From the sequence record OR770614.1: DNA of 64,000 nucleotides; one strand, 5' to 3'. The stretch's first letter is position 1; the number at the start of each line of letters is the position of its first letter. This document shows, piece after piece, positions 19,027 to 53,844 of the stretch. The translations under genes were made by a program, and so were the position numbers. The notes beneath the pieces are model-generated. The model was given only the letters and a program-made list of their open reading frames with translations, did no database searches and was not told where the DNA came from.

Positions 19027-19129
19027 TGTTCCTAATGAGATTCGAACTCATAACCTACAGATCCATAAATTATCCTATCCAGGTATAATTCATAAAATCC
19101 GTACACTCTGACCATTGAGCTATAGGAAC
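19027..19129 (-). ncRNA. tRNA-like RNA with anticodon loop replaced by a long hairpin
   Basis: Acceptor GTTCCTA/TAGGAAC, D arm GCTC-AATGGTCA-GAGT, T arm ATGAG-TTCGAAT-CTCAT; 38 nt between TACGG and CTGTA instead of 7. Confidence 0.8.
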
Positions 19130-19494: not shown

Positions 19495-19561
19495 ATACTA
19501 TATAGTTAATTAATATTTTTAAATAAAATTTTTTAATAAATAGGAATTTTAGACCAAAAAA

Positions 19562-19631
19562 AGCTTATCCGAGGGATCGAACCCCGGACACATGATGAAA
19601 ATCATTGCTCTACCAACTGAGCTAGATAAAC
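19562..19631 (-). ncRNA. tRNA-like RNA with a 4-nt anticodon loop (Phe-like scaffold)
   Basis: GTTTATC/GATAAGC acceptor, GCTC-AGTTGGTA-GAGC D arm, CGGGG-TTCGATC-CCTCG T arm, anticodon arm ATGAT-TTTC-ATCAT; own early-type promoter 19644-19658. Confidence 0.75.
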
Positions 19632-19678
19632 TTTCTTCATTATTATAATATATGTTTATATTTCACTATATTACGCTT

Positions 19679-21055
19679 TTAATAAATATAATCTTCGATA
19701 TCAATTTCATTTTGTTTAATTGTCATATCATGGAAAGACTTCATGGAGCTTGTTACAATTGCTTGAGCTACCTGATTGACTAATAAACCAATATTTTCAA
19801 TACCTAATTTGTAAGGTAATTCTCCTGCACATTTACTACAAATATCTTCACTCGCACAATACATAGGACTTCTGAAGTTCAATACTTTCTCAATATACTC
19901 ATCTACATTTTCAGGAGTTAATAATATTAATTGACCTTTTCTTCCTGAAGTATTTTCAAAATATCTATAAAGTAAAAGACTTGCATTATCTTTAGTTAAA
20001 GTTAATTTTAATGTATGTTTTGTTCTACAATCAGAACCTTGTTTATCTAATACAGTTGTTTGGAAAGCGGACATAAGTTTTTTAGCTTGATCATTTTATT
20101 ATCTATATTTTACTATAGATTAGACTATATCTTATGAATTTAATCATTTCTATATTTAGTCGTTGGACAACTTTATTAAGTTGATGCTAGTTAGTTTTAA
20201 CATTCTAGCAATTAATAGAATTTATTGTGAGCATCTAATTTACCCACCTTCTTGAGTACCTAAAGCACGTCCAGCTGAACCAGCTGTCATAATATCACCA
20301 AACATATATAATTCTTCTGGATCAATTCCATCAGCTAAAGAACTCTTAGCAATACGTATTTTACTAGGATCAGCAAAATTTTTATTTGCTCCACGAATAA
20401 GAGCTGTTAATTTAAAGTTATTTTCAAAACTACCTCTTGATTTACTATCATAAATATCAAGATCTGCTAAACCTTCTAATTCTTCCTTACTTAACTTAAT
20501 TAATTCTTCTTCAATAGCACTAATAGCATTCAATTCTTCACCAGGAGTATTTAATGCTTTACCGTATTTCTCTAGTAATTCTTCTTTCTTTTGTTTAACT
20601 TTATCTGGAGCAACCATCATTGTAGTTGTTAAGCTAGAATTAATAAATCCTGCTATAGAGAAACCAAGCCATTGAAGTTTATCAATATACATATTCATAT
20701 CTTTAGTTGTAATAACGTCATTAAGTAATAAACTAGATAGTTCAGATTGTAGATTTCCTACACCTGATCCTCCCATATCTTTATTCATATATCCTATAAT
20801 AGGTCCTATTTTATTGTCTAATATAAATTTATTAAATATATATCTTCCAACTGTTGTTCTTTCATCTTTACTATTATAAACTAAATCTTTTTTAAGTTTA
20901 AATCTATCGCTAGGGTTAAACATTGGTTGTGTATTTTGTCTAAATGCAAATAATTCTTTAAGTTTATCAAGAGTAATATCTTCTTTTTTTATACTTAATA
21001 AAGTTGATATTTCTTTCTCAGATAAATCTTTTTTATCATAAGTCATATTAACCAA
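19679..21055 (-). CDS. rpoC: RNA polymerase beta' C-terminal subunit (probably virion RNAP), spliced; exons 21055-20242 and 20091-19679, 408 aa
   Basis: Splicing gives ALGTQEGGYQAKKLMSAF (bridge helix/switch); RSPMYC..ICSKC Zn site; SMKSFH trigger loop; late promoter 21089-21100. Confidence 0.88.
20092..20241 (-). mobile_element. Group I intron, 150 nt, no ORF
   Basis: P1 GTGGGT/GCTCAC with U-G splice pair; P AATTGCTAG, Q CTAGCATC, R TCCAACGACTA, S AAGATATAGTCT; terminal G. Confidence 0.9.
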
Positions 21056-21371
21056 TTTAATTTCACTTCTTTCATATATTATTTGTAATATTTGAATGTT
21101 ATCATCAATTTTATATTTTTGTAATTTATAAAATTATCTCATAAAAAATTTGAAAACCTCCGGAATATTATATTTATATAATAATATAATTATTATAATA
21201 TATTAAAATATAAAATATTTTAATATATAAAAAATATAATATTAGAGGGGGTATATTTAGATTTTGATATAATCAAAATCTAATAAATTATTTCTCCTTA
21301 AATTACATAAAAAAGATAAAGAAAACAAGTACATATATAAAATTTATTAAATGAAAGGAATTGAATAATAA

Positions 21372-24300
21372 GTGAAGTATCTTAATAGATTAAAGAATTT
21401 AAAATTCTATTCAATTTCAGGATATAAGATTAAAGCTATAGATGAAAATATTAAGGATCAAAAGAAAAACCAATTAATAATTTATAAAGGTTTTAAAGAA
21501 AATTCATTTATAGAATTCTTAAATAGTGGTATATTATATTATCAAAATTTCAAGAATATTTATACTCCTAGAATATATAGAACATCAAATAGAAAATCAA
21601 GATTAATTACTAATATTTCAGATTACCAACAAGAAATTAAAAGTAAATCAATCAAATCTTATAGAGTAGAAAGAAATGAGAAATTATTTAAAGGTAGAAA
21701 TTATATAGTTGATTCAAGTAAATTTATCAATCTTGAAAATAAATCTTTAATGACTAAGAATTTTAAAACTGTATTAGATTCAATTAAAAATACTTATAAT
21801 AATTTAAATAATCCAGAAGAATATGAAAATTTATTATATGTAATTAATGTAGATGGATACAATAAATCTTCTCAAGAAGCTATTAGACCAAATACAAAAG
21901 ATTTTATGTCAAGTTTATTTATGATGATTAAGAATCAGGAAGAATTACCTCACAAAGAAAATCAAAATGTAGTAGCTTTATTTGTTTCTATTGAGAACGG
22001 TATAATGTTCAAATTTGATTTTAAAGATTATAATAAATTGAATAATAGATTAAGACAAAGGTTAAGAAGAGCTATTGATTTAAATACTCAACAAATGGAT
22101 ACAGATGAAATTTCTAATGTTGAAGATGATGATAATACAGAAGCTATAGATTCAACTATTAAAAAGAAATCATTTAACAATGTTAAAGATATTGATCCAA
22201 TTGAATTACAAGATAATAATAAAGATGAAATTAATCAAAACATTGAAGATTCTAAGATGGAAAAAATATCTAAGAAAATAGATGATACATTAAGATATAT
22301 CAAATCTAATGATAATATTGATATGGATATTAATGATGAGTATAATATTGCAATGATAATTGAAAAAGAATTAAATGATAATAATGATCTTATTGATATT
22401 GATGAAGATACATTATATAATGATGTACTTGATAAGAATGATTCATTTAAATCAATTAAAAGAGATATTAAAAATAAATCATATATTGGAGACACTGCAT
22501 TAAAGAATTCTAAAAAGATATTATCATTATCTAAAAATCAAGATGAATATCTTGAAAAATTAGAAGATTTTAGTTTCTCTGAAGATAGTGTTATTGATAG
22601 AGAGATTAATGAAAATGTTAATAGTATTAATGATGAAGCAATCAACAATGTATCTTCGAATGATTTTGACTTATCTTATATGAAAAAGACATTTAATAAA
22701 GACTTTGTAAATATCATGAAGAGTTTTAATGATAAAGAAGAAATACCTGTATTCATTAGCAAAATGAATGTAGAAGATAATTCAGATTCTCAATCATTAA
22801 AAAATACTGTAAAAGTCCAATTTAAGAGTCCTGATGGGATTAATCATAATGTAAAATTTGATGTACCTAAAATTATTGATGGTAAATATTTAAAATTAAA
22901 TGGTGGTAAAAAGGTACTAACTAAACAATTAATGATGTATCCTATTGTTAAATATAGACCAGATACAGTTTGGATTACAACTAACTATAATAAATTCATC
23001 ATTGAAAAATTTGGTAGCAAAGAAAATTCTGAAACTGAATGGCTTAAAAAAGTTATTGAAGATAAACAAGTACTAGAATACATTAAAGATAAAAATGATA
23101 TTAGTATTCAAAAAGGTAATTCATCTTTAATTAATAAAGAATATTTAACTTCTGTGTTGTATAATAATTTATCTAAAAATATATTAAGATTCTCTAAAGA
23201 TGATTTAATAATTGATTTTAATCAAAGAAATCTTAAAAAAGTTATTTCAGAAAGTAAAACTTTAAGTGAGATTGATTACGATAAAGATAAATACTATCCT
23301 ATCGGTTATAATTCAAACAAATCTAAATTAATATTGTCAAATACTACAGAATCTATTATTTTTAAAGCTACTAAAAGTAATATAGAATCCATGAATATTA
23401 ATATCACAGATTATATTATTGAACAACTTGAAGATAATATTGATTTTAGTCTAATAGATAAAAAATTCAGTAAAAATATTCAAGCTAGTAAAACAATGGC
23501 ATTCTCTCGTGTTAAAATTACTAATAAATTAATCCCTACAATAGTGTTATTAGGTTTCTATAAAGGTTTAACTAGTATTCTTGATCTCTATGAAGTTGAT
23601 TATAAGTTTGTTAAGGAAAATGAAAGAATAACTATTAAAGATAAAAAGAATAAAATTAAATTCCAAGATGGTTATCTTATTTATTCAACAGATAAATTAA
23701 GATATGATTTATTATTATCAGGATTAAATACTATTCCTACTTCACAATATGACTTTGAAGAATTTAATAGTGAAACACCTTACTTAGAATACTTTAATGA
23801 TAAGTTCTATAGTCGTAATGTTGGTAAAGGTATTAAAAATGCATTAGATTTAGCAATGGATCCTATTACAGAAGATGTATTAAGAGATTTAAAATTACCT
23901 GAAACTATGGTAGAATTATTACTCTTAGCTAATACCATGCTAGAAGATGTAACTGCTAGAGAACACAATGACATGGGAATATATCGTGTACGTGGTCCAG
24001 AACAAGTTAATGCTTTAATATATAAAATGATTGCAAATGCATATAAAGAATATTCAGACTCTTACAATAATAAGAATCCTAAGAATATTTCTGTTAAGCA
24101 AGACCAATTAATCAAAACTATAATGGAACAACCTACTGTAGATGAAGTATCTGATCTTAATCCATCTTTAGAGATTGATAAGATGACTTCTGTTACATTT
24201 AAAGGTCCAGCAGGACGTAATAATGAACAATCATATGAACCTGACATTCGTTCATACAGTGAAAGTATGCAAGGTGTATTAGGAATATCTAGTCCTGATT

Positions 24301-25982
24301 CTAATAAAATTGGGGTAGTTAGACAGCTTTCATATAATTCACTAATTAAATCTACTAGAGGTTATACAGATGGTGGTAAAAAAGATGCTAATGACACATC
24401 TCTATATACTCCATTAGAACTACTTAACCCATATTCTAGTAGACATGCCGATGATCAAACATGGATAGTCGGCTTAAAAACTATTTAATTGCTGAAATTA
24501 CTTTAAAGTTAATCAGCATCAATCAAATTGTTCAACGACTAAATAATAGTTACTAATTATATAATTAGTAATGATATAGTCTCAACTATGTATAAAGTAT
24601 ATAGAAATAAGATAATGTCTCCACGTATTGGAATGACTGGTACTCAAGCCAAGCACGTAATTCCAACAAAAACTAATAGTAAACCATTAGTTGGATCTGG
24701 TGTTGATAAATCTTTAGCTTATCAATTATCAGATACATTTGCTTTTAAAGCTAAGCAAGATGGTAAAGTATTAAAAATTAATGAGAAAACTGGTTTAATG
24801 ACAGTGGAATATATCAATGGTGAAAAAGATATTGTTGATATATCTGAAAAATTAGCCAAAAACTCTAACTCAGGTTTTTATCAATCTAATAAACTTGATC
24901 CACAATTTAACGTAGACGACACTTTTAATAAAGGTCAAATACTTGCTAAAAATAATAATTTCTTTGCTGGATCTGGTAAAAATAATGATATTCAATTCAC
25001 TTCAGGTAAATTATCTAAAGTATCTGTAGCTAGCTCATATGGTATTATAAATGCCTTTCATTATAGTAATGTAATGTCAAAAAATTATTAATTGCTGAGA
25101 AATATTAAATTAATCAGCATCTCTATATTTATAGAGTTCAACGACTAAATATAATTATTCATTAATGCTAATGAATTTGATATAGTCTAATCTATTATAA
25201 AAATATAATAGCTAATATAAATGACTTATGAAGATAGTTCTATTATTTCTAGTAGTATGTCTGAAGCAATGTCTACTAAAGTTACTATGAAGAAAACAGT
25301 AAATATTCCATCAAACACAAATATTCAATATATAGTTAAAGAAGGTCAGAAAGTACGTACAGGAGATCCTTTAATGATATTTGAAACTTCATTCGATGAA
25401 GAAGGTATTGGTTCTTTATTAGATAAAATTGGTAGTGAATTTGAACAAGATATTCAAGATATAGCTAACCGAGCTGTTAGAAGTAAATATACAGGTAATA
25501 TTAAAAAGATTAATATTTATTATAATGATGATATTGAAAATATGACTGATAGTTTAGCTAAATTAGTTAATAATTACATTAAAAAATCAAATGATAAATA
25601 TAAAGAATATAAATCTGGAATTAAAAATAATAAAGAAACTTTACCTGGTATTGATGTAGATATCGCTGCAGTTGATAAAATTAATACAGAGAAAATTAAA
25701 GGGGAAAAAGTTGACGGAGTTCTTATTGAAATCTTCACTGAGTATGAAGATGATATGAGTGTTGGAGATAAAATTAGTTTCTATGGAGCTTGTAAAACTG
25801 TAGTTGCTGATGTAACTCCTCCAAATGAATCTCCTTATGCAGAATATAGACCTGATGAGGAAATCGAAGCTGTATTCTCTCCATTAAGTATTGTCTCTCG
25901 TATGACAGTTGATATTTACATGATGCTATTTACAAATAAAGCTTTAATAGAATTAAAACGTAAAGTAAAAGATATGATTTAA
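21372..25982 (+). CDS. rpoB: RNA polymerase beta subunit (probably virion RNAP, phiKZ gp178-like size), spliced; exons 21372-24452, 24618-25043, 25224-25982, 1421 aa
   Basis: KYLKLNGGK, SPDSNKIGVVRQL, spliced HADSPRIGM and SSYGTYED, GDKISFYGACKTVV, PLSIVSRM; late promoter 21324-21335. Confidence 0.88.
24453..24617 (+). mobile_element. Group I intron, 165 nt, no ORF
   Basis: P1 GCCGAT/GTCGGC; P AATTGCTGA, Q AATCAGCATC, R GTTCAACGACTA, S GATATAGTCT; terminal G at 24617. Confidence 0.9.
25044..25223 (+). mobile_element. Group I intron, 180 nt, no ORF
   Basis: P1 GGTAT/ATGCC; same P/Q/R/S core; ends AATATAAATG; splicing yields YG|TYED. Confidence 0.9.
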
Positions 25983-51210: not shown

Positions 51211-53844
51211 TTAAGCTCCTTTACTTTTTATTTTATCAGATACTTTCTTAGCTGCAACATTCAATGGAGGTAAACCATGAAATTCTTGAGCAAATGCTAC
51301 ACTATCTTGACTGTTAAATTTACTAATAAATTCAGTATTAAAGTCGTAATTTAATTTGTCTTCTTCATACTTAGGAACTGTCATTGTAGATTTATCTTGT
51401 ATTTGAATTTTACCTATATGTCCTTCAGGTGTTATATTATATGCTCTAATAATAGATGGATATAGAGCAGTCAAGTCAAAGTCACAAACATTACTAAATA
51501 ATCTATTAGATCTAATATCTCTACCTTTAACTAAAATATCACCCATACGTTCTATTAATGTCATATTAGCTACAAATCCACCACGTATTTTATCTGCGTT
51601 TGGATCAGATAGTATTTTAGAGTGATTATTACTTAATACATATCCTTGATTTTCAAAGAAGACAGAACTACGATTTCTTAAACAAATAGTTTTCTTAAGT
51701 GCTTTACTTGGTCTCGTTCTAGTCATATCTACAATAGAGAATAATAAATCAAACATATTAGTGTTCTTTTCTATTAAAGCAGTTAATACTGTATCTTTAA
51801 TATTGTATAGAATAAATGTATAATAATCTCTAAAATGTAAATCAGAGATAGATCCTTCATATACATCCTTTTTAATACCAGTTTCTTTTTCACCAACATC
51901 ATTTAACTTAACTGATTCCATAACACCATTTGGTTTATTTACATTTGCATATAAAGCTAATTGGTCAATCCAGTTAGTGTATGAGTTAGTTTCGAATGTA
52001 GATGATCTATTAGCTGCATCTGTAGCATTTTTATCTAATCTATAATAAGCTTTTTTATCTTGTAAATCTTTAGAACAGAAATAATCAGCTGGATCTTCTC
52101 CATTAGCTCTGATTCTTTCAAATATAGCAGGAAAATCGTAATCAAGATTCCACTTTTATTTAAATAGACTGTATCTTATTTGTTATTTAAACAAATTTCC
52201 TTATTCAGTCGTTGAACGTATATTAATACGATGCTGATTAGTTTAAACACTTCCAGCAATTAAAGGAATTTTACACGACCTAGAATTTTGATTAAGCCGT
52301 ACATACATCAGGTTTACTAATTTCATTAATATAATATAAAAATGCTTTTATAATTTCCATTTCAGATTCTAATTCATATATTTCAAATTCTAATCCTAGA
52401 TTACCAATTTTACTATTTTCATTATTATAAATATTATTTAAATCTTCTAACAGTTTACTTTTATTTTCCATAGTTTCTTTATAAGTATCTGTATCATATT
52501 TTAAAGCAAATGTTAAACATTTACGTTTACTCCAGTCAACAGCAGTTATAATATTAACTTCAGCCTCTGCTTTTTCTGGTTCAGGGACATTTATATTAAC
52601 TTTATACAATTGTATAAAGATTAGACTATATCTTTTAAATTCAAATATATTTCCATTTAAAATTTTTGTAAGTTTTACTATTTCTATAACCATTTGCAAC
52701 TGCTTGTATTCCTTTTCTATCTATATTTAATTCTTCCGCTGCAAATTTAGCACTTTCATATTCTTTTATAATTTTATCTGTTTCTTTATCTATTTGTGCC
52801 ACTGGTTTTCTTCTCTTTTTTAATGATTCTTCCATTTTATCAGTTTTATGAAGATTATTTTCTATAGCATGTAAATTATTTTCTAATACTGACATCCATT
52901 CTAAATTAGATAAATTATTATTTAATTTATTACCGTCAATATGATTAACTACATTTTTATCAATATCTTTATTTTCGATAAAATTCTCTGCAACTAAACG
53001 GTGTATTCTTCTTGTATGCTTCTTATTATTTTTATATAATTGAACATCTTCATAACCATTTTTATTTATTCTTGTCTTTAATACTCTTTCTTTAATAAGC
53101 ATTCTTTTATCTTTACCTTTTAAAGAATCATTATATACATATCTTGAAACCGATTTAACTTTACCAGTATTGGATATTTTATAGTAATTTTCAAAATCTT
53201 TAATGTCTTTCCATATTTCTTTCATTATTTTCCTCCTTTTATAAAGGAAGTATATTTGAATTATATTATTATATTTAGTCGTTGAACACTAAATTAGTGA
53301 TGCTGATTATTTTTAAACTTTTCAGCAATTAATAATTTTTTAATTGAGCTACCTAAATTAACCCAACTGTTTGCGAAGAATCAACTTCTATATCAAAGAA
53401 AACTATATCAATTCCAACTTTACTATCTAAGTTTTGTTTGATATACTCATTAATATTATAATCTTCAATATTAATATCAGATCCATGAACATTATTCATT
53501 AAATGAAAATCTTTTAATTTTCTAAACTCTTCATAATTACCTGAAGATAATATTCTATCGTATTCTGATTTATCTTGAGCATTACCTGCTTCTCTAACTA
53601 TAGATTTAATAACATCTTTATGTTTACAGTGTACAGTTCTAACTTTTTCTTTAGCCATAGAACCTACAACTATATTAGGTGGTAACCAATGTTCATCTTT
53701 AGTTACATAATAATGCATCATAGGATCTACTATTTCCATATGTTTCTTAGTTCCATCTTCTTCTTTGACTACCATTACTACTTTTTCTTTTTTATTAGAT
53801 GTTTCTTTTTTATTCAAATATGTTGATTTTATAAAACGACCCAT
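51211..53844 (-). CDS. Family B DNA polymerase, N-terminal half (exonuclease plus motif A), spliced; exons 53844-53361, 52587-52295, 52152-51211, 572 aa
   Basis: Splicing restores FFDIEVDSSQTVG|FPEPE and CTA|WNLDYD; YNIKD ExoIII; DFDLTALYPSII motif A; no motif B/C. Confidence 0.9.
52153..52294 (-). mobile_element. Group I intron, 142 nt, no ORF
   Basis: P1 TACGGCT/GGTCGTG; P4 TGCTG/CAGCA; P7 GACTG/CAGTC (covariant with GACTA/TAGTC of the sister introns); terminal G at 52153. Confidence 0.9.
52588..53360 (-). mobile_element. Group I intron, 773 nt, with HNH endonuclease ORF in P8
   Basis: P1 TTGGGT/GCTCAA; P/Q/R before the ORF, S AAGATATAGTCT after it; ends AATATAAATG. Confidence 0.9.
52641..53225 (-). 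CDS. Intron-encoded NUMOD4-HNH-NUMOD1 homing endonuclease (I-HmuI-like)
   Basis: EIWKDIKDFENYYKISNTG, IHRLVAENF, VNHIDGNKLNN..NLEW, YESAKFAAEEL; SD AAGGAGG. Confidence 0.92.
   Translation of the reverse strand: MKEIWKDIKDFENYYKISNTGKVKSVSRYVYNDSLKGKDKRMLIKERVLKTRINKNGYEDVQLYKNNKKHTRRIHRLVAENFIENKDIDKNVVNHIDGNKLNNNLSNLEWMSVLENNLHAIENNLHKTDKMEESLKKRRKPVAQIDKETDKIIKEYESAKFAAEELNIDRKGIQAVANGYRNSKTYKNFKWKYI

Follow-up and report, generated by a model that had tools for sequence, protein, structure and literature searches.

A very small group I intron within the gene for RNA polymerase beta in Staphylococcus phage PB50 and the proposed ectopic spread of its multi-copy family

Staphylococcus phage vB_StaM_PB50 is a Staphylococcus jumbo phage (OR770614.1, 273,701 bp). 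We analyzed a stretch of 64,000 nucleotides from this record, referred to as the window; all positions are those of the window unless a record is named, and record positions are obtained by adding 186000. The subject of this report is a 180-nt insert, termed beta I2, in the gene for the beta subunit of the virion RNA polymerase (RNAP). In the PB50 record, this gene appears as three separate coding sequences (CDSs) named 'viral RNA polymerase beta subunit' (record 207372-210488, 210588-211091, and 211221-211982), and no introns or joins are annotated. The exons, including the two that flank the insert (Table 1), were translated singly and compared one by one. The intact homolog of phage DC4 matches the RNAP beta families of PHROG with an E value of 1e-196. 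As a whole, the data described below are best explained by a miniature group I intron without an open reading frame (ORF) that belongs to a multi-copy family, for which ectopic spread is inferred. We hold this overall explanation to be very probable.

The bounds of the insert could be fixed exactly. The alignment of the window with phage Madawaska runs to position 25021 and resumes at 25224, and the aligned ends are separated by 22 nt in Madawaska but by 202 nt in PB50. Therefore, the insertion comprises exactly 180 nt. A spliced, gap-tolerant alignment to the intron-free DC4 placed it at record positions 211044-211223, i.e., 25044-25223 of the window. The insert interrupts the conserved stretch ..SSYG/TYEDSS.. 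of virion RNAP beta (here and below, a slash within a motif marks the insertion point), and AR9, a jumbo phage of Bacillus, is uninterrupted there (..SADYTYEDSS..). We take the interrupted motif to be the GYNxEDS active-site motif of bacterial RNAP beta. The break is codon-exact, and the beta genes of Madawaska, MarsHill, DC4, and AR9 are contiguous at this site. Beta I2 has a G+C content of only 20%. It contains no ORF within its 180 nt and no endonuclease ORF in a peripheral loop. A blastn search of the phage collection with the intron gave matches in six phages only, plus 49-nt chance matches in Flavobacterium phages.

Table 1. Positions of exons, introns, predicted helices, and TnpB-bearing relatives (window positions unless a record is named)
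Feature	Position	Strand	Details and basis
Upstream exon, virion RNAP beta	24618..25043	+	SPRIGMTG...VASSYG; translation, tblastn to AR9 beta, PB50 annotation
Group I intron beta I2, 180 nt	25044..25223	+	5' splice site after U25043; terminal omega G = 25223
Downstream exon	25224..25982	+	TYEDSSIISS... to stop; 50% identity over 248 aa to AR9 beta, from the first residue of the exon
Exon junction of beta I2 (predicted spliced product)		+	..CATATGGT/ACTTATGA..; exon ends flanking the insert
P1	25041..25055	+	exon GGU + intron AUU with AAUGCC (guide 25050-25055); U25043-G25053 splice-site wobble; sequence reading, Rfam alignment
P2 hairpin CAUUA-UAG-UAAUG	25059..25071	+	MFE fold; the four other window copies lack P2 (17-nt gap)
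P3, 5' strand	25083..25088	+	partner 25151-25156, pseudoknot with P7; paired at 98.7% across 52 sequences; both sides change in 5 of 6 pairs
P4 around minimal P5	25093..25119	+	P4 25093-25098 with 25114-25119; P5 25101-25103 with 25109-25111; RNAalifold, pair counts
P6 hairpin	25121..25136	+	compensatory changes in up to 26 of 52 sequences per pair
P7, 5' strand, A-(C bulge)-GACUA, in R element	25141..25147	+	partner 25183-25188; 100% paired, with a single double change, from A-U to G-C, in pol I2
P3, 3' strand	25151..25156	+	pair counts
P8 hairpin, 18 nt	25158..25175	+	RNAalifold, pair counts; place of the HNH ORF in the polymerase sibling
P7, 3' strand (UAGUCU), in S element	25183..25188	+	pair counts
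P9 hairpin	25193..25210	+	pair counts, MFE fold
Beta I1, 165 nt	24453..24617	+	P1 GCCGAU with GUCGGC; skipped exactly in RNA contig
RNAP beta' intron, 150 nt	20092..20241	-	P1 GUGGGU with GCUCAC; skipped in RNA contig, 1-nt ambiguity
pol I1, 773 nt	52588..53360	-	HNH/NUMOD4 (NUMOD4 + HNH_3) endonuclease ORF 52641-53225 in P8
pol I2, 142 nt	52153..52294	-	nearly no P9
1.65-kb TnpB members, Machias	record 205526-207178, 227900-229552, 77816-79457		
1.65-kb TnpB members, LY01	record 134552-136201, 80914-82557		

The four classical group I elements can be read from the sequence, namely P (UUAAUUGCUG; TTAATTGCTG), Q (AAUCAGCAUC; AATCAGCATC), R (GUUCAACGACUAAAU; GTTCAACGACTAAAT, 25136-25150), and S (GAUAUAGUCUAAUCU; GATATAGTCTAATCT, 25179-25193), together with the 3' end AATATAAATG that closes at 25223. 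The core is a stripped-down P1-P9 structure without peripheral extensions. When the sequence was folded alone, the minimum free energy (MFE) structure contained P2 and P4-P9 (-31.8 kcal/mol, z = -2.79). For the covariation test, 52 members of the intron family described below, from about 40 sites, were aligned with MAFFT without regard to structure; P3 was entered as a pseudoknot, and 500 shuffles served as control. RNAalifold found P4, P6, P7, and P8 in this alignment unaided. For 37 pairs in seven helices, 94.9% of the cells were paired, compared to 75.6% after shuffling and 26-48% when the partners were slid; the corresponding numbers of cells with double changes were 327, 100, and 50-86. 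None of the 500 shuffles matched the observed values, and 26 pairs change on both sides. The G-C pair of P7 beside the bulged C, the predicted guanosine-binding site, is invariant in all 52 sequences. P7.1 and P7.2, as found in subgroups IA1/IA2 (T4 td, SPO1, and Twort type), are absent, and a single hairpin, P8, lies between the 3' strand of P3 and J8/7.

Some observations speak against this assignment. Rfam returned no group I match in the 64-kb window at the gathering score, nor in 10 kb at E values up to 10. A full-length match to Intron_gpI (RF00028, model positions 1-253) was obtained only when 311 nt were searched alone; it lacks the P5, P8, and P9 extensions, scores 15.4 bits against a threshold of 50, and has a high composition bias. 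P1 of beta I2 is weak, since the exon takes part in only 3 bp, and an intron of this size may require a helper protein for splicing. Nevertheless, 25044-25223 is confirmed as a real and unusually small group I intron in the RNAP beta gene of PB50.

RNA-derived sequences cover the same region. One metatranscriptomic run (labelled tick metagenome) contains two contigs from a close relative that differs from PB50 by about 2.3%. They cover window positions 20000-25900 and show exactly three joints: 25043->25224 (180 nt skipped), 24452->24618 (165 nt), and 20090->20241 (150 nt, with a one-base ambiguity). These joints are identical to the bounds derived independently for beta I2, for a second intron of the same gene (beta I1), and for an intron in the RNAP beta' gene. 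As a caveat, contigs that skip the introns could derive from a strain without them or from library DNA. Apart from beta I1, which is missing in Machias, all three introns are present in the closest sequenced genomes. Machias and AH12 lie further from PB50 than the contigs do, yet both carry beta I2 and the beta' intron, and AH12 has beta I1 too. We regard the joints as probable splicing, not as proof of it.

Beta I2 has four siblings in the window: beta I1, the beta' intron, and two introns in the DNA polymerase gene, pol I1 and pol I2. R-element copies with at most one mismatch were located at five places of the window, each of them a gap that separates pieces of RNAP beta', RNAP beta, or DNA polymerase. 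After removal of its HNH ORF, pol I1 is 89% identical to beta I2 over 147 aligned bases and the closest of the four; the others reach 83-85%. The census of the family used a covariance model of the 5' half of the core, built from the five window copies, and an nhmmer profile gave identical counts; seven phage genomes were rebuilt from record stretches. The model detected 22 copies in PB50, 31 each in Machias and AH12, 34 in LY01, 12 in Madawaska, and 10 in MarsHill, none in S6, DC4, PALS_2, or SA1, and one weak match in AR9. This amounts to about 140 copies in six phages, at about 55 sites in 16 genes when placed by alignment to DC4. These site counts are approximate, because no boundaries could be assigned automatically for 14 of 140 copies and those of a few more were inaccurate, in LY01 at the beta I2 site by 12 nt. 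The introns interrupt two pieces of DNA polymerase, six genes for RNAP subunits, the genes for GyrB, TerL, NrdA, the prohead protease, and a virion protein, one HNH gene, and two giant ORFs. Family introns measure 127-190 nt, and most copies are 140-190 nt long and ORF-free. A few siblings carry HNH-type ORFs, such as NUMOD4/HNH_3 in pol I1 and HNH in an nrdA copy, and about 85% of the copies are without an ORF.

A previous, sequence-only reading of this window had called a 180-nt group I intron in RNAP beta at exactly these bounds and had described its core and 3' end as nearly identical to the HNH intron of the polymerase gene. Both statements hold, and the motifs quoted for them are present. 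Its count of five sites in three essential genes falls far short of the 22 copies in PB50 and of the family as a whole. The comparison with related phages that it had suggested divides them into the six that carry 10-34 copies and the four that carry none.

Machias, AH12 (record 237204-237415), and LY01 (record 138059-138242) have a further intron at GMTG/TQAK, a site that lies downstream of that of beta I1 at a distance of 24 nt. Its 5' arm is nearly that of the beta' intron at RALG/TQEG, and both targets read GGT/ACTCAAG.

The occupied sites have short sequences in common. Every resolved family copy is preceded by U. Among 57 site representatives, the exon end pairs with the internal guide over at least 4 bp in 84% of the cases, compared to 33% with foreign exons, and over at least 6 bp in 42%, compared to 3%. 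Near-identical 5' arms are found behind CGAT (guide GUCG) at six sites in five genes, behind GGGU (guide GCUCA) at seven sites in six genes, and behind GGU/ACUCAAG in both beta and beta'. Within the arm classes, the likeness of the targets ends 4-5 nt upstream, with a single exception of 10 nt. Sub-lineages thus have the same guide and the same 4-nt target in genes without relation to one another, which gives good circumstantial support to an ectopic spread of the family. We infer that the approximately 55 sites were reached by ectopic insertion behind exon ends of 4-6 nt that pair with the internal guide. Reverse splicing would predict such a pattern and, with subsequent reverse transcription and recombination, would be the most economical of three possible routes.

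In the best explanation, the RNAP beta gene would be transcribed through the intron, and the RNA would fold into the P1-P9 core without P7.1/P7.2. Splicing after U25043 and G25223 would then restore the ..SSYG/TYEDSS.. active-site motif. The excised intron could reverse-splice into transcripts behind 4-6 nt that match its guide, and reverse transcription and recombination would fix the new copy. At the beta I2 site, the intron would since have been transmitted vertically or by homing. A reverse transcriptase gene (RVT_1, PF00078; 505-533 aa, 76-84 bits) is present in all ten Staphylococcus jumbo phages, in PB50 at record positions 151181-151819. A bolder version holds that the mini-introns are an actively proliferating, RNA-guided mobile family whose reverse-spliced product is copied by the phage's own reverse transcriptase; we put this forward tentatively and consider it rather doubtful. 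[quoted passage not shown]

Several points count against ectopic spread. The reverse transcriptase gene was rejected as a marker of intron-rich phages and does not correlate with the introns, because it is also found in four phages without the family. Splicing itself needs a match between guide and exon, so that selection following an untargeted insertion would produce this pattern too. A tree of the family, based on 96 intron bodies, is star-like, with 43 of 85 inner branches unsupported; orthologs cluster, but the order of the jumps cannot be read from it. Apart from its orthologs, beta I2 is closest to an intron of AH12 and Machias located at DNA polymerase site 17530, with weak support (89 in the Shimodaira-Hasegawa-like approximate likelihood ratio test, SH-aLRT). 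Finally, beta I2 itself would appear to have been inherited vertically or to have homed, and nothing indicates recent movement. Its site is occupied in PB50, Machias, and AH12 (98% mutually identical) and in LY01 (188 nt), and it is empty in Madawaska, MarsHill, and DC4. PB50, Machias, and AH12 form clade A (94-97% genome-wide identity); clade B consists of Madawaska and MarsHill (97%), DC4 (94%), and LY01 (91%), and the identity between the two clades is 80%. Between AH12 and LY01, beta I2 is 82% identical and its flanks are 84-89% identical. Because the intron diverges about like its flanks, it is either about as old as the split between the clades or an old homing arrival. DC4 lacks the family although it is nested among the intron-bearing phages of clade B and is 94% identical to Madawaska/MarsHill, which implies either wholesale precise loss in DC4 or repeated gain in its relatives.

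The sequence-only reading had favored transposition, for example by reverse splicing, over simple homing. For the family, ectopic spread has the circumstantial support described above; for beta I2 itself, nothing points to a recent jump, and this copy seems to have been inherited or homed. A grouping of the introns with site-specific homologs of distant phages, which would speak against transposition, was not found in AR9, because its beta gene is contiguous at the beta I2 site despite six group I matches elsewhere.

Three other explanations were considered. According to the PB50 annotation, the 180 nt could be a spacer between two naturally separate beta-subunit genes: GenBank lists three beta CDSs, jumbo-phage RNAP subunits are often split, and an in-frame ATG (25221-25223) directly precedes the downstream exon. 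However, no ribosome-binding site lies ahead of 25221, the break is codon-exact inside a conserved motif that is contiguous in Madawaska, MarsHill, DC4, and AR9, the supposed spacer contains a covarying group I fold, and the RNA contig joins both parts exactly. This leaves the spacer explanation with hardly any probability. Alternatively, the family could have spread as DNA. The mini-introns would then be non-autonomous derivatives of IStron-type elements, which combine a group I intron with an IS200/IS605 insertion sequence (IS), and they would be moved in trans by a TnpA-type single-strand transposase and retained through TnpB, with insertion 3' of a short target recognized by the left end of the element. 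Indeed, Machias and LY01 contain five 1.65-kb members at five sites in five genes (Table 1), located behind ..GAT and ending in ..ACAG as in group A IStrons. Each comprises a complete mini core (about 170 nt), a 400-aa TnpB (HTH_OrfB_IS605, OrfB_IS605, and Cas12f-like TNB), and ~195 nt of GC-rich 3' sequence, possibly a guide RNA; in total, there are four TnpB genes in Machias and six in LY01. They resemble CdISt1-type IStrons of group A in the combination of a group I intron with TnpB, in their position behind ..GAT, and in the end ..CAG (Tourasse et al. 2014, PMC4227781). In contrast, beta I2 and all other PB50 copies are without an IS part. OrfB_IS605 and Y1_Tnp gave no match in PB50, and no Y1 TnpA was found in any of five phages tested. 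Moreover, PB50 with 22 mini-introns and AH12 with 31 have no TnpB, as is also the case for DC4, and the targets are diverse (GGGT, CGAT, GAGT, GGAT, AGGT, and GCCT), whereas a single IS lineage normally holds to one target. We therefore consider DNA spread of IStron derivatives unlikely.

We judge equally improbable that homing endonucleases acted in trans at ectopic sites, through relaxed specificity and illegitimate recombination, and that selection kept the insertions that fit the guide. Siblings with endonuclease ORFs (pol I1 and the nrdA copy, among several) and the many free-standing HNH and Hef-like endonucleases in these genomes are compatible with such a process, and survivorship could explain the match between guide and exon. 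But the likeness between targets extends over 4-5 nt (once 10), compared to the 14-40 bp of endonuclease sites (PMC4227781), and the roughly 85% of copies that are ORF-free are not expected from it. Ectopic insertion guided by the intron RNA is the explanation that we prefer for the family.

With regard to known systems, AR9 offers the closest comparison. Its introns were reportedly described by Lavysh et al. in 2016, its virion RNAP beta gene g189 being joined from 6 pieces. In our analysis, this gene gave six Rfam group I matches of 31-102 bits, four of which pass the threshold (69-102 bits), and none lies at the beta I2 site (AR9 record 149000-156000). One of the six adjoins an HNH/AP2 endonuclease gene. 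AR9 and the mini family share the kind of host gene and the wording of the P/Q/R/S core (GTTCAACGACTA.., GAAGATATAGTCTCAAC), and the AR9 intron behind GGTGGGT has the guide GGCTCAC and a P3 wording like that of the GGGT class of the mini family. On the other hand, AR9 introns measure 160-380 nt, with about 110 nt from R to S instead of 35-45 nt, and the family model gives a single weak AR9 match (28.9 bits), compared to 33-93 bits inside the family. The mini family consists of reduced relatives of AR9 group I introns of 260-380 nt.

The classic minimal self-splicing group I intron is that of Azoarcus, which is GC-rich, single-copy, and proven to splice by itself. This 205-nt intron of pre-tRNA-Ile is said to have been the subject of work by Reinhold-Hurek and Shub in 1992 and by Tanner and Cech in 1996. 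It shares with beta I2 the compact P1-P9 core and the lack of an ORF, but the PB50 introns of the window measure 180 nt down to 142 nt, have 20% G+C, are multi-copy, and reside in protein-coding genes. On its own, beta I2 is unremarkable, as it merely adds one intron that splits a conserved motif in a phage polymerase; its interest lies in the small size and in the family. With sizes of 142-180 nt, below the 205 nt of the Azoarcus intron, and ~20% G+C, these introns therefore offer a test of the minimal natural group I ribozyme and of its need for a helper.

Spread by reverse splicing was proposed for group I introns of rDNA, with recognition of 4-6 nt, although no direct evidence for this pathway was available (Hausner, Hafez and Edgell 2014, PMC3984707). 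There as here, related introns occupy distinct sites with 4-6 nt in common that can pair with the guide; the PB50 family differs in its dozens of sites in protein-coding genes of phages and in the reverse transcriptase gene in the same genome. That introns interrupt these phage genes is already published, predicted from protein alignments only. Korn et al. (bioRxiv 10.1101/2020.12.14.422802; J Virol 2021) predicted that introns disrupt genes of the phages MarsHill, Madawaska, and Machias, i.e., within this phage group and in genes also affected here (RNAP subunits, DNA polymerase, TerL, prohead protease, and gyrB). In the part of that publication available here, the exons come from protein alignment only, and intron class, structure, family, copy number, and targets are not given. 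Accordingly annotated records exist: the RNAP beta gene is joined from four exons in the Machias record and from two in the Madawaska record, with boundaries predicted by protein alignment to AR9. The paper on DC4 states that Rfam found no introns in this phage, and our family model likewise finds no copy there.

Related introns also occur outside these genomes. A pattern scan of IMG/VR yielded 107 stretches with 204 related cores, located in contigs of 200-400 kb with 29% G+C. Of these cores, 177 were counted as compact, as their R-to-S distance is at most 60 nt. Therefore, compact introns of the beta I2 type are widespread in uncultured jumbo phages. One example of about 185 nt splits ..FDGDTVS/IGTPPE.., the NADFDGD catalytic motif of RNAP beta'. 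With 10-34 sibling introns per genome, none in sister phages of 94% identity, and guide-matched targets in unrelated genes, the Staphylococcus phages provide circumstantial support of unusual richness for the idea that group I introns move to ectopic sites. Mobility is testable, since both the phage and its host are amenable to laboratory culture.

Standard RNA annotation overlooks the entire family, Rfam having detected none of the five introns of the window, and as a consequence essential genes of PB50, AH12, and LY01 were deposited as fragments labelled 'hypothetical'. In PB50, the second and the third beta fragment were annotated with artefactual starts: the ATG at 24588 lies within beta I1, and the ATG at 25221 consists of the final three bases of beta I2. 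The first and second fragments as deposited read into the introns to chance stops (24486-24488 and 25089-25091). Two unusual tRNA-like genes were also noted on the minus strand of the window. The tRNA at 19027-19129 carries a 34-nt insert in its anticodon arm; it reaches 52.5 bits with Rfam and is not called by ARAGORN. For the second, at 19561-19632, ARAGORN gives an 'anticodon' of two bases.

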